DNA from: Anthoceros angustus
Taxonomy: Eukaryota; Plantae; Anthocerotophyta
DNA length: 64,000 bases
NCBI GenBank assembly: GCA_010909165.1
Contig: VJWM01000240.1
Location: forward strand, 124,001 to 188,000
Direction: 5' to 3'
The translations under genes were made by a program, and so were the position numbers. The notes under the pieces were generated by a model. It worked only from the letters and a program-made list of their open reading frames with translations, did no database searches and was not told the DNA's origin. Of the stretch, positions 4,217-37,558 are shown in pieces; positions within the stretch are counted from its first letter, which is position 1, and the number at the start of each line of letters is the position of its first letter.

Positions 4217-5581
4217 TTACAGGTCATTCAAGCGATGCAAAATCCCGTCTACATTGTCTTTTATCGTCTTGCGCAGTTCTTTGATCTGGTTGTTCGACCT
4301 GTCCAGCTCCTGGGCCACTTTGTTCAGCCTGTCCACATCTTGGGCCATTTTTGCTGCTAGTGTCCCGTTCTCCCCCGTCTTTGTTTGGCTCTTATCAGAC
4401 TGCTGCCCCAACTTTGTTGGCTTTCCCTTTTCTGCCTTTATTGCCTTCTTCGCACTTCCGTCAGACTTCGGAGCTACTTTGGATAGCTTTTCCTTTTCTG
4501 CCTTCTTTGGAACTCCTTGAGACTCCTGTGAAGCATCACTCTTCCTCTTCCCTTGACCCAGTGCATGCTGAGGGGTTTCAGATGACACTGGGGGACCCGT
4601 CCTTGGCCTTGGAGTAAAAGGACAAGGGTCCGAGTCTTGGTCGTTGCTAGGTGTCTCCTCACGAGGCAGCCTCCTGGAGCTCCTGGTCTCTCGTTTGGGC
4701 GGGGGTGCATTACTCCTCTTTCCAGGACCTCCTTGCTTGTTTCTTCCAACAGCCCCATGTTCCGCACTGGAGCGCAGCACCTTTGCTTCCTTCTCCACAA
4801 TTGGCAAGGCAAGGCTGATGTACCGGTGGAGAAGAGCCTTTGCCGCTTGCGGCAAAGCTCCATCCCTTGCTATCGTCGTCTTTACATAGCTTACTCTATG
4901 GCCAGCCCAGTTGTATGTCTCACCATAATTCATGCTTCTTGCGAAAGCCAATGTTTGGCCAACAGGAAGTATTGCCGGAGGTCCCGCCAGGAACATCTTC
5001 TTCCTGTGCTCCTTGATGTACTCTTGCAGTTGGGGCTGAAGACTGTGGATCAGTATTCCGTCCTTGACGCTGACAGTATCGTTTTCCAGGCTTTCTTCTG
5101 TCATGAACTCCTCAACTTCCTTCCTCAGGTTCTTGCTCCCGGAGCCCGGAATTGGCACCCCATGGGATGGCAGGCCAAGGACTCGGCCTACCACTTCGGG
5201 TTCCAACAGTAGCTGTGATTCCCTATTGATCTGAAACATGGCGGGCACCTTGTCTCTGCCATCGTGGAAACCGGTAATGGAATAATTGTCACTTACAGCC
5301 ACTGGTTTGCGACTGCGAGAGCAGGTGGTGAAAGGAGCTGGAGTACCATGCTCTGTAAGGCAACCCAGCTTGATAATGAAGTCCCTGTTGCTTTTCCATG
5401 AACCGGGCTCCGGAACCTCCTCGTCAAAGTCTTCAAAGTCTACCTCTGATCCATCGTCTTGTCGCACTCCCTCATCTGCTGGTACAGACTCTTCAAGAGT
5501 CTCACCGTCTGTTGCCATGGGATCGTCCACGCCGTCTTCGTCTTTCACCCTTTCCACTTGTGCATGCGCACCGCTGCTCAT
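4217..5581 (-). CDS. tandem family copy 1 (PMD-like domain, disordered tail, C-terminal coiled coil)
   Basis: Shared motifs LGCLTE, YSITGFHDG, LEPEVVGRVLGLPSHG, YNWA, YISLALP. Probable ATG at 5581 just after a 3' splice acceptor at ~5600. Confidence 0.75.
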   Translation of the reverse strand: MSSGAHAQVERVKDEDGVDDPMATDGETLEESVPADEGVRQDDGSEVDFEDFDEEVPEPGSWKSNRDFIIKLGCLTEHGTPAPFTTCSRSRKPVAVSDNYSITGFHDGRDKVPAMFQINRESQLLLEPEVVGRVLGLPSHGVPIPGSGSKNLRKEVEEFMTEESLENDTVSVKDGILIHSLQPQLQEYIKEHRKKMFLAGPPAILPVGQTLAFARSMNYGETYNWAGHRVSYVKTTIARDGALPQAAKALLHRYISLALPIVEKEAKVLRSSAEHGAVGRNKQGGPGKRSNAPPPKRETRSSRRLPREETPSNDQDSDPCPFTPRPRTGPPVSSETPQHALGQGKRKSDASQESQGVPKKAEKEKLSKVAPKSDGSAKKAIKAEKGKPTKLGQQSDKSQTKTGENGTLAAKMAQDVDRLNKVAQELDRSNNQIKELRKTIKDNVDGILHRLNDL

Positions 5582-6345
5582 ACTCCTCAAAGTTCTAGTC
5601 TGCGCATCAAACGTTTGACAGACACTTAGCCACACACACAACGTACTACTACAACAGAGCGACGGCCACGTCACAAACAAACAAACAAACATTGACAGAT
5701 GGAAAGGCTTTGGGTGCCAAGACATTCTTCACCATGCCTGAAGCTGACGAGAGAGCACTTGCACCAAGATGAAAGGTGCCTACAACAGTCAAGCTTAAGA
5801 GCTTGAAGGAAGAAAGGATGCGAACAGTCTCCACAATGCTTGCGTGTGCTGGGCAGTTAGCATCATAATTATAGATCGCAAGCCGCCTTGATTCACACAT
5901 GTAAGGGGTAGTTAGCATAATGGCAGAGAGTGGGAAGTAATGTATCTATTTTGGACAGCACTTTCGTAGGTGATTGCACTTGGAGTCTGGTACATCCTTA
6001 GCCCACTCCAGAGATGAACGCCAGGAAATTGACACAGTCCGCAGATGGCTGCTGATTTTCACCTCAGGGAACGCTGAATTGTTCAAAAATGTTAACTTCC
6101 AGAGCATTAGTCTAGCCGATTTCGAGAAAAAACATGCATCCACAAAGTGTCAATTCTCCAGACTAAAGAGAAGCACTTCCAAGTTGCATCCTATCAAAAA
6201 AAGAACAAAAAAATCACAGATGTAAGCGAGATCAACCGGCAAACCAAAATATCTGTCATCCAAAAAAGCCAATCCTTCTTCTTGCACTTATCAACGCTGG
6301 CAGCTCACTTTCCTCCTTCAACATCAGACTCCACGTGTATCTTGA

Positions 6346-35610: not shown

Positions 35611-36022
35611 AATATGCCTGTAAGCGGATTGTCGTAGTCTTACAGCCAATAAAGGATCCGCAGATGCCTCTATGGAATAAAGCCCAAATCACTACAAAAG
35701 GATTAACGGATGCACAGTAGGGCAGACATGTCAGGAGTGCATGCGTGCTCAAAAGGAATCTTAAACTGGAGCTCGAGTACACAACTCCAATGCATCTCCA
35801 GTCTTGCCGACATTCCTGTCCGGCAAGATTGAAGTGCAGAGAACTGCTGTTGAGGCTGTCCAGACTAAGACAAATGACGTCATCTGGAGGCCCAGCTCGG
35901 TTTCTGGCCCAATGAGGCAGGCTTGGGATCCTGGCCTCTTGCAGGTATACTATGCCGGTGCGTCTGTTCTGGCACGGATGGTTTACTAGTTTAATTCTTG
36001 TTGTTGTGGGGGAGAGAAACAG

Positions 36023-37558
36023 ATGTCGATGTCCAGCGAGATGAAGAGTGAAGGAATGGAATACAGAGAAGACATGGGAGTTGAGGGCAGCAAGTCGACA
36101 GGGGGAAGGAAGGTGCCGTTGCTGGCCCACTCTTCACCTTCCGGAGAGGAGGAACTCATCCAGAACGACCTTCCTGGCACAGAGCAGCCGACGTGGAACG
36201 TAAAACCGGGGCCATTGGAGAGGTCTGTGGAGGATAAGGTACGAGGACGGCGAGTTGGGTTCCACAACAGATTGAGCAAGCCGGTGACCCTGCAGAAAGA
36301 CTGGAAGATCGTAGGCCATCACACTGGTGGAGACGGATCCGGGACCCCTGACCTGCTTCAGATCAACGGTGCTGGTGCTGTGCATGTGGTGTCCCTGGAC
36401 GAGGAGGCAGTGGGAGAAATCCTGGGCATTTCATACACAGGCGAGCTGGTTTCCGGCACACGGACCGCTGATGCACTAGAAACCGCCACCATGGTGGCAT
36501 TTGTGGGGAAGTATCTGACTCCGACCAGTAAACATCGGGCTCCCTTCTACTGCAACCAGTGGGATTTGTACGTGTGGGTGGAGTGCATGATACCACAGCT
36601 CCGAGCCTACGTCGAGAAGCACGTGAGCAGGCTCTTCATAGCCATCACGGCGGTGTGCCCTCTTTGGGTGGCGTTTTATCTGGCCAAGAGCCGGTATGAG
36701 AACAAGAAGTTCAACTGGGCGCAGAACAGAATTGCATATGCCGTGCAGACAGTGCTGCATGAAAGGAAGTTTTTTGGCGAACATGCTAAACAAGCTATGG
36801 ATCTTCTGGCGAGCTACAGCCGACTGGCAGTGGGGGTGGCTGGTGCTGTACAGAGCCAGCCGAGAGCAGTGGAGATGTGTGGGGTCCATGTGGAGTTGGA
36901 GGATGGTGAGAGGAGGAGGCTGCCGAGGAAGAGGGTGAAGAATCAGGCAGAGGGAAGAAGGCGATCCAGCAGGATATTGCATGCACATATTGACAATCTG
37001 GAGAGTGTTGATATTGCTGATCTGGAGAAGGGTGCACATGCGGGGCCATCAGGAGATGGCGAACAGGTGTTATGCCCACCGAGCCGTGAGCTTGGAAGGA
37101 AGATGGGGAAGAAAACGCCTGGTGGCGATGTCGTCCAGGAGGCCGTCGGTGGAAGCCAGAGCAAGAAGCTGAAGGCGGCGACAACAGCAGCTGGGGTGGT
37201 CATTACGCCCAGCAGCTGCAGCAATGGGTTGAGGAGAGGAACGAAACATGGTCCGACGGTGTACTCGGGGAAAGACAAGGATGATGCAGTTCAAGCTAAA
37301 GCTGGACAGTTCAGAGATAAGGAAAGAGAACTGGAAGCGAAGGACCAACGAATCACAGCAATGGAAAGGGAATTTGAGGCAAAGGACCAACAAATCCGAG
37401 CCAAGGATAGAGCACTTGCAGCGAAGGACCAACAAATAAGAGCCATGGAAACAGAGATTGAAGCAAAGGACCAACAAATGAGAACCATGGAATTGGATTG
37501 GGCCAAAGAACGAAAAACGTTCAAGGGGATCATTCATCATCTCTCAATTGTGGAGTAG
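36023..37558 (+). CDS. family copy 7 (inverted, most divergent; AKDQQ coiled-coil repeats)
   Basis: Motifs INGAGAVHVVSLDEEAVGEILGISYTG, LRAYVEKH, KFNWAQNR, LLASY, RRSSRI; C-terminus GIIHHL resembles copy 1 GILHRL. Confidence 0.75.
   Translation: MSMSSEMKSEGMEYREDMGVEGSKSTGGRKVPLLAHSSPSGEEELIQNDLPGTEQPTWNVKPGPLERSVEDKVRGRRVGFHNRLSKPVTLQKDWKIVGHHTGGDGSGTPDLLQINGAGAVHVVSLDEEAVGEILGISYTGELVSGTRTADALETATMVAFVGKYLTPTSKHRAPFYCNQWDLYVWVECMIPQLRAYVEKHVSRLFIAITAVCPLWVAFYLAKSRYENKKFNWAQNRIAYAVQTVLHERKFFGEHAKQAMDLLASYSRLAVGVAGAVQSQPRAVEMCGVHVELEDGERRRLPRKRVKNQAEGRRRSSRILHAHIDNLESVDIADLEKGAHAGPSGDGEQVLCPPSRELGRKMGKKTPGGDVVQEAVGGSQSKKLKAATTAAGVVITPSSCSNGLRRGTKHGPTVYSGKDKDDAVQAKAGQFRDKERELEAKDQRITAMEREFEAKDQQIRAKDRALAAKDQQIRAMETEIEAKDQQMRTMELDWAKERKTFKGIIHHLSIVE

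Follow-up and report, generated by a model that had tools for sequence, protein, structure and literature searches.

Why should a single plant locus carry seven divergent paralogues of a gene that no Pfam family describes, and do they belong to the host or to a mobile element? The question is raised by a 64,000-nucleotide stretch of the Anthoceros angustus genome (assembly GCA_010909165.1, contig VJWM01000240.1, positions 124,001 to 188,000 of the forward strand; hereafter the window, numbered from its first letter), in which seven gene copies (c1 to c7; Table 1) share a domain of about 200 amino acids; six form a tandem minus-strand array, and the seventh is inverted. The original prediction, made from these letters alone, saw a candidate cluster of domesticated transposon genes with an unnamed PMD-like domain, which would encode lineage-specific, fast-evolving chromatin regulators. 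On balance, the copies appear somewhat better read as a lineage-restricted, birth-and-death family of host genes with a PMD/VANC-like fold, whose products may act as dimeric, nuclear DNA-binding modulators of silencing or transcription. The family adds a new branch or variant, still unnamed, to a known kind of plant domain, and it can be placed there by structure and embedding searches only.

Every copy matches the others in tblastn searches within the window (E 1e-13 to 1e-48, 20-57% identity), and a family hidden Markov model (HMM) run over all six reading frames of the window found no eighth, so that the predicted seven-member family, with six tandem minus-strand copies and one inverted, is confirmed. 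The ordered motifs described for it (W..R.FL..LGC.TE, TITG, LSLEPE.VG.VLG, L..YI, NWA and LL..Y..AALP) are visible in the family alignments, as is RRS(K/S)R in the tail of the proteins, and c7 indeed lacks the LGC motif. The view of the copies as strongly diverged yet mostly open applies to five of the seven; c2 is frameshifted and c6 carries an in-frame stop. The closest copy to c2 is c3, at 51-57% amino acid identity. Because the frame beyond the c6 stop still encodes RRSKR and a terminal helix, this stop suggests either a recent nonsense mutation or an intron that has gone unrecognised. An acceptor-like pyrimidine tract with CAG marks the 5' end of the c3 open reading frame (ORF), which makes a 5' exon possible, and c1, c5 and c6 show the same feature just upstream. 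5' exons may thus exist for all four copies, and the term intronless is not established.

The proteins share a three-part layout, in which a variable and often acidic N-terminus leads into an alpha/beta core domain of about 200 residues, followed by a disordered, usually basic linker with RRS-x-R and by a C-terminal helix or coiled coil. The isoelectric point of the core is 8-10 in 9 of 11 members. In c1, an acidic N-terminus precedes the core, the basic disordered linker carries an RSSRR motif, and the protein ends in a coiled coil, and c4 has a long acidic/basic tail of low complexity with an RRSRKRR motif and a terminal helix. Tandem repeats occur inside the tails, with units of 42 nt in c7, 207 nt in c5, 18 nt in c3 and 30 nt in c1, and the C-terminal coiled coil of c7 is made of the 42-nt repeats. 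Residues 422-508 of this tail are predicted to form a parallel, in-register homodimer, with an interface score (ipSAE) of 0.62 against 0.00 for the best control; of proteins with solved structures, 21 of 30 known as pairs and none of 23 known as single chains attain this mark. Agreement between runs extended to at least 94% of contacts, the predicted local distance difference test (pLDDT) of the partner was at least 82, and one copy was modelled in this manner. The c7 tail is therefore a candidate for self-association through its coiled coil, predicted with model confidence and not by measurement.

To which kind of domain does the core belong? No Pfam family matches any member (hmmscan; six window copies and both halves of c2 at E ≤ 1, and eight relatives from a second organism at E ≤ 10). 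AlphaFold2, run on shallow alignments made up of family members alone, gave two models, one for the c1 domain (pLDDT 86.2, predicted template-modelling score 0.83) and one for the c4 domain (m6912814b8bab, pLDDT 84.7; the five models all lie at 82-85). Among the cluster representatives of the ESM Atlas, a structure search matched streptophyte clusters only. An unnamed 912-aa cluster aligned over 190 of 204 residues with a template-modelling (TM) score of 0.70 between predicted models, and a Transposase_32 cluster, 98% of whose members carry PF20167, aligned over 174 residues (positions 7-204) with a TM score of 0.62 by query and an rmsd (root-mean-square deviation) of 3.9, in a single search of predicted models. 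A cluster composed entirely of PMD proteins gave a TM score of 0.55 by query over 165 residues (rmsd 4.3; predicted models on both sides). In a language-model feature search, the c1 domain found 30 named-cluster matches at about 0.92, 16 in the DUF1985 set and 3 in the PMD set; the matches share 176-183 features with the query, the PMD cluster being placed at 0.92 with 176 shared. Among PDB chains, the only one to align over the whole domain (150-165 residues), and with both models, is VANC21, the anti-silencing protein encoded by the Mutator-like VANDAL21 elements of Arabidopsis (Hosaka 2017, PMC5735166), which has a solved DNA complex (PDB 9LNJ/9LNK); PDB Z scores were at most 3.7. A PMD-like fold is thus supported by three independent but moderate lines of modelling, namely the ESM Atlas structures, the embeddings and the VANC21 alignment, and the domain probably belongs with the plant PMD/Transposase_32/DUF1985 (VANC) fold group. 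The strand-then-helix motif LSLEPExxGxxLG may also resemble the PMD motif cited in the original prediction.

The family appears to be narrowly distributed. An exhaustive search with the family profile gave ten matches among 1.84 billion representative proteins; eight are real, and all eight come from the Logan-assembled run SRR33208241 and have the same three-part architecture. They occur as tandem pairs, single copies and broken copies, and one of them, P0001 (822 aa), holds two complete domain copies in a single ORF, an arrangement not seen in the window. Their neighbours in this genome are PIP5K, an amino-acid transporter, Sgf11, peptidase S10, NIF and P450 genes. Word-indexed protein searches with whole c3, with the c1 domain and with the 14-member domain alignment, in the last of which the length filter excludes full-length relatives, gave no match, which is weak evidence. 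Sequence profile searches of the PDB gave chance matches only, and VANC21 was not found at E ≤ 10. The family has so far been seen only in the hornwort-like genome and in one other sequenced organism, apparently a narrow lineage.

Are these genes of the host? In a FastTree phylogeny of all 14 domain rows (no outgroup, midpoint-rooted), c1 is sister to the second gene on contig L004 of SRR33208241, with support of 0.86, and c7 is sister to that pair, while a separate clade unites c3-c6, next to P0002. A four-exon gene is located downstream of, and convergent to, both c1 and the second L004 gene. Between the genomes it gives four collinear exon matches (58-76% amino acid identity, summed E 2.8e-36), with nonsynonymous divergence (dN) of 0.22 and synonymous divergence (dS) of 1.1-1.4; a resemblance to EMC5/MMGT is a lead only, with no Pfam support exon by exon. 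Since c1 and the L004 gene share this neighbour, the locus predates the split of the two organisms. Both genes are open over about 500 codons in the same three-part layout, with linkers that cannot be aligned. The dN between their domains is 0.53 against 0.22 for the neighbour, and their synonymous sites are saturated (33 of 43 fourfold sites differ). Setting this dN against the dS of the neighbour, the ratio dN/dS (omega) of c1 would be roughly 0.4-0.5 or lower, which suggests a constrained gene that evolves roughly 2.5 times faster than its neighbour. The synteny of c1 and the L004 gene, both open despite synonymous saturation, argues for selected host genes. As to mobility, the larger ORFs of the window contain no transposase, reverse transcriptase or integrase domain, and when bases 1-40000, which include all seven copies, were scanned for repeats, no copy proved to be flanked by terminal inverted repeats (TIRs) or by direct repeats resembling long terminal repeats (LTRs), in line with the earlier statement that no transposase, reverse transcriptase or TIR is adjacent; the search of 1.84 billion proteins likewise found no transposon-borne homologue of the family. 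The sequence data support a birth-and-death host gene family and not an active transposon. What can be retained of the predicted domestication is that a host gene under selection occupies a stable locus, as judged from microsynteny and constraint; descent from a transposon is conceivable.

Several results nevertheless weigh against a host family of PMD/VANC-like regulators. The PF10536, PF20167 and PF09331 profiles were unmatched, for the eight relatives even at E ≤ 10 (hmmscan); by the profiles' own criteria the domain is outside all three families, and with no similarity at the HMM level membership of PMD proper is not supported. The language-model search with c4 gave no usable match, and the TM scores of 0.55-0.70 hold between predicted models only, where a value above 0.5 proves little. 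An in-frame ATG was looked for upstream of the c3 domain and none was found, no 8-mer is common to at least five of the seven upstream regions, the dN/dS between c2 and c3 is near neutral (0.75-0.85), and broken copies amount to two of seven in the window and to about three of ten in the SRR33208241 genome. Could the proteins form an orphan, lineage-specific family, unrelated to PMD/DUF1985 and resembling these by a chance alpha/beta likeness, such as a coiled-coil scaffold or adaptor? The profile results, the low PDB Z scores, a Foldseek search of the PDB with nothing significant for either model, and the points just made on c4 and on TM scores would all suit it. However, structure and embedding searches converge on Transposase_32, PMD and DUF1985 among 7.7 million clusters, and VANC21 recurs with two models as the sole whole-domain alignment in the PDB, which makes an orphan family unlikely, if still a serious competitor. 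The PMD-like domain of the original prediction is supported, by moderate lines, at the level of fold and not at that of Pfam profiles.

Alternatively, the copies may belong to a dead or unrecognised transposon as passenger ORFs, amplified locally, now decaying and neither domesticated nor functional. The frameshift in c2, the premature stop in c6, the broken copies on L005-L007 and the c2-c3 ratio would fit such decay, and the nearest fold families are mostly transposon-borne. A near-neutral ratio would be expected of this pair if c2 is decaying, and synonymous sites are saturated in all the other pairs. Decay accounts poorly for five copies whose ORFs remain 364-511 codons long at 20-40% identity and with synonymous saturation, for syntenic orthologues both open, or for the lack of transposase, reverse transcriptase, TIRs and LTRs in the regions scanned, and the head-to-tail spacing of the array copies, 2-2.8 kb, is typical of tandem gene duplication. 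Passenger ORFs therefore seem quite improbable. That the ORFs are artefacts of composition and not genes at all might be argued from the absence of the window copies from the protein collections searched, but it is effectively refuted by pairwise E values down to 1e-48, by relatives of the same architecture in a second organism, by confident AlphaFold2 models and by a codon-position pattern (GC1 > GC2 < GC3) resembling that of neighbouring genes.

If the copies are host genes with a PMD/VANC-like fold, how might their products act? By analogy with VANC21 and MAIN/MAIL1, they would enter the nucleus, pair via the C-terminal coiled coil and, as VANC21 does, use the globular domain to bind short DNA motifs; once bound, they could modulate silencing or transcription of their targets, and those targets would diversify as copies duplicate in tandem, diverge rapidly and have their tails remodelled through repeats. 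A dimeric nuclear binder of DNA motifs is proposed as the most likely mode of action because the VANC-like fold, a coiled coil predicted to dimerise, variable regions shaped by repeats and fast paralogue divergence are shared, and nuclear location, DNA binding and a chromatin role may be expected by the same analogy. The alignment of the 5' flanks of the copies revealed no conserved block. A more speculative version, which we consider doubtful, holds that the genes encode VANC-like, sequence-specific DNA-binding factors of the bryophyte host, which counteract or direct silencing and whose duplication and tail remodelling reflect an arms race with their targets. If true, the PMD/DUF1985 fold would have been a host chromatin-regulator module early in land plants, before the transposons of angiosperms came to carry it.

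Table 1. Coordinates of the family copies, of other features of the window, and of related copies in SRR33208241.
Feature	Sequence	Position	Strand	Core domain	Remarks
Copy 1 (c1)	window	4217-5725	-	4793-5401	intact 502-aa ORF; likely start is a later ATG
Copy 2 (c2)	window	6346-7343	-		probable pseudogene; one frameshift between ~6894 and 6939; lacks N-terminal LGC segment
Copy 3 (c3)	window	8326-9420	-	8746-9342	open for 364-380 codons
Copy 4 (c4)	window	10444-11967	-	11203-11838	intact 507-aa ORF
Copy 5 (c5)	window	13307-14560	-	13820-14446	intact 417-aa ORF
Copy 6 (c6)	window	16519-17361	-	16642-17232	280-aa ORF; in-frame stop at 16519-16521; same frame open for 92 further codons (16243-16518)
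Copy 7 (c7)	window	36023-37558	+	36248-36841	inverted, 18.7 kb from the array; intact 511-aa ORF
207-nt repeats in c5 tail	window	13468-13853
42-nt repeats in c7 tail	window	37321-37492
Four-exon neighbour gene	window	3563-4140	+		small, with hydrophobic segments; convergent with c1
26-bp tandem array	window	9628-10012
Inverted repeat	window	18129-18269
PPR protein	window	19171-22314	-		1047 aa
2OG-Fe(II) oxygenase	window	22622-23605	+		PF03171, E 2.4e-11
Segmental duplication	window	26900-30500 and 32200-35300
Gln/Ala-rich ORFs	window	27464-28201 and 32866-34320			one in each half of the duplication
PPR-like fragments	window	30396-30462 and 34936-35002			in the halves of the duplication
WEE1-like kinase	window	38954-40306	-		450-codon ORF; Pkinase E 8e-46
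OTU-like cysteine protease domain	window	44485-45201	-		238-aa ORF; E 3.4e-5
Skewed region	window	46000-52000
283-nt tandem duplication	window	46356-46938
P0005, then P0001	SRR33208241 L001	4575-7043 (P0001)			tandem pair; P0001 has two domains
P0004, then second gene	SRR33208241 L004	4560-6176 (second gene)			tandem pair
Single copies	SRR33208241 L002, L003
Broken copies	SRR33208241 L005, L006, L007

Within the array, about 14 units of 26 bp (88% matches) are found between c3 and c4, 200-600 bp upstream of c3; VANC-type proteins bind repeat-arrayed motifs, yet nothing ties these units to the family. Between c6 and the PPR gene there is a 50-nt inverted repeat, 86% complementary and with a 41-nt loop, which could be a hairpin or a remnant resembling a miniature inverted-repeat transposable element. 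The PPR gene, directly upstream of the array of family copies, is intronless, with an E motif, consistent with a land-plant source, and a 351-nt internal periodicity. PPR genes also adjoin family members on L001 and L006, in different orientations, and the L001 protein is 49% identical to that of the window over 431 aa; PPR-based synteny is at most possible, because the orientations disagree and PPR genes abound.

Further along, a segmental duplication has two halves at a distance of about 5.3-5.7 kb, and each half contains a highly repetitive Gln/Ala-rich ORF with no Pfam match, tandem arrays of 21-24-nt and 40-45-nt units, and a PPR-like fragment. The ORF for the 2OG-Fe(II) oxygenase is intronless, and the WEE1-like gene has its whole kinase domain in a single ORF, which would be unusual, the WEE1 genes of other plants being intron-rich. 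The match to the OTU-like cysteine protease domain is just above the gathering score. The skewed region has a GC skew of -0.27 to -0.33, a negative AT skew and 44-57% GC, with ORFs that have no Pfam match.

Few plant factors are known that act against silencing by DNA methylation or Polycomb at specific sequences. PMD and VANC proteins belong to these, and to our knowledge they have been described until now from angiosperms and their transposons. If its placement is correct, a structurally related family at a syntenic, hornwort-like host locus would push the history of this fold much deeper in land plants and would inform the question of which came by the domain first, hosts or transposons. 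The copies would also provide a compact, intronless-looking set of paralogues for testing how the fold reads DNA and changes specificity.

How does the family compare with known systems? Transposase_32 (PF20167) is the best named structural neighbour of the domain; the family differs from it in lacking an HMM match and a transposon context and in the length of its proteins (280-511 aa against about 740 aa). PMD (PF10536), represented by MAIN, MAIL1, MAIL2 and the transposon-borne PMD-A/B/C, likewise includes stand-alone genic versions without other catalytic domains. The predicted folds appear similar, and the motif resemblance noted in the original prediction (L-G-L-P..G and Y-S/N-W) is plausible. 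The family domain is shorter, however, at about 200 aa, and comes with a C-terminal coiled coil and an RRSxR linker and no Pfam match; nor do we know of a PP7L-type partner for it, unlike for PMD. PMD has been described as an angiosperm family (PMC7156037), and MAIN, MAIL1 and MAIL2, which associate with motifs in promoters, act against Polycomb silencing (10.1101/2024.09.27.615353).

The two angiosperm groups have themselves been linked: the PMD-C domain of MAIL1 is reported to be structurally similar to the DUF1985 domain of VANC (10.1101/2024.09.27.615353), and MAIN and VANC have been called structural homologues, VANC21 being predicted to self-associate via a coiled coil (PMC13547354). The direction of capture is debated, a 2026 paper arguing that for VANC it ran opposite to that from transposon to host (PMC13547354). 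Differently from VANC (PF09331), the family described here is found without a VANDAL or Mutator-like element that would also encode VANA and VANB, with no transposase domains in the larger ORFs, no TIRs and a syntenic locus. VANC21 relieves silencing and binds a 9-bp motif that occurs in tandem repeat arrays, and VANC paralogues shift specificity quickly, with variable regions that evolve by tandem repeats (PMC5735166). The likeness to VANC21/DUF1985 covers several points: in both, a globular domain is combined with a coiled coil predicted to mediate self-association (here for c7 only), conserved domains stand beside highly variable regions that evolve by tandem repeats, and diversification into paralogues is fast, and DUF1985 clusters dominate the language-model neighbours of the c1 domain.

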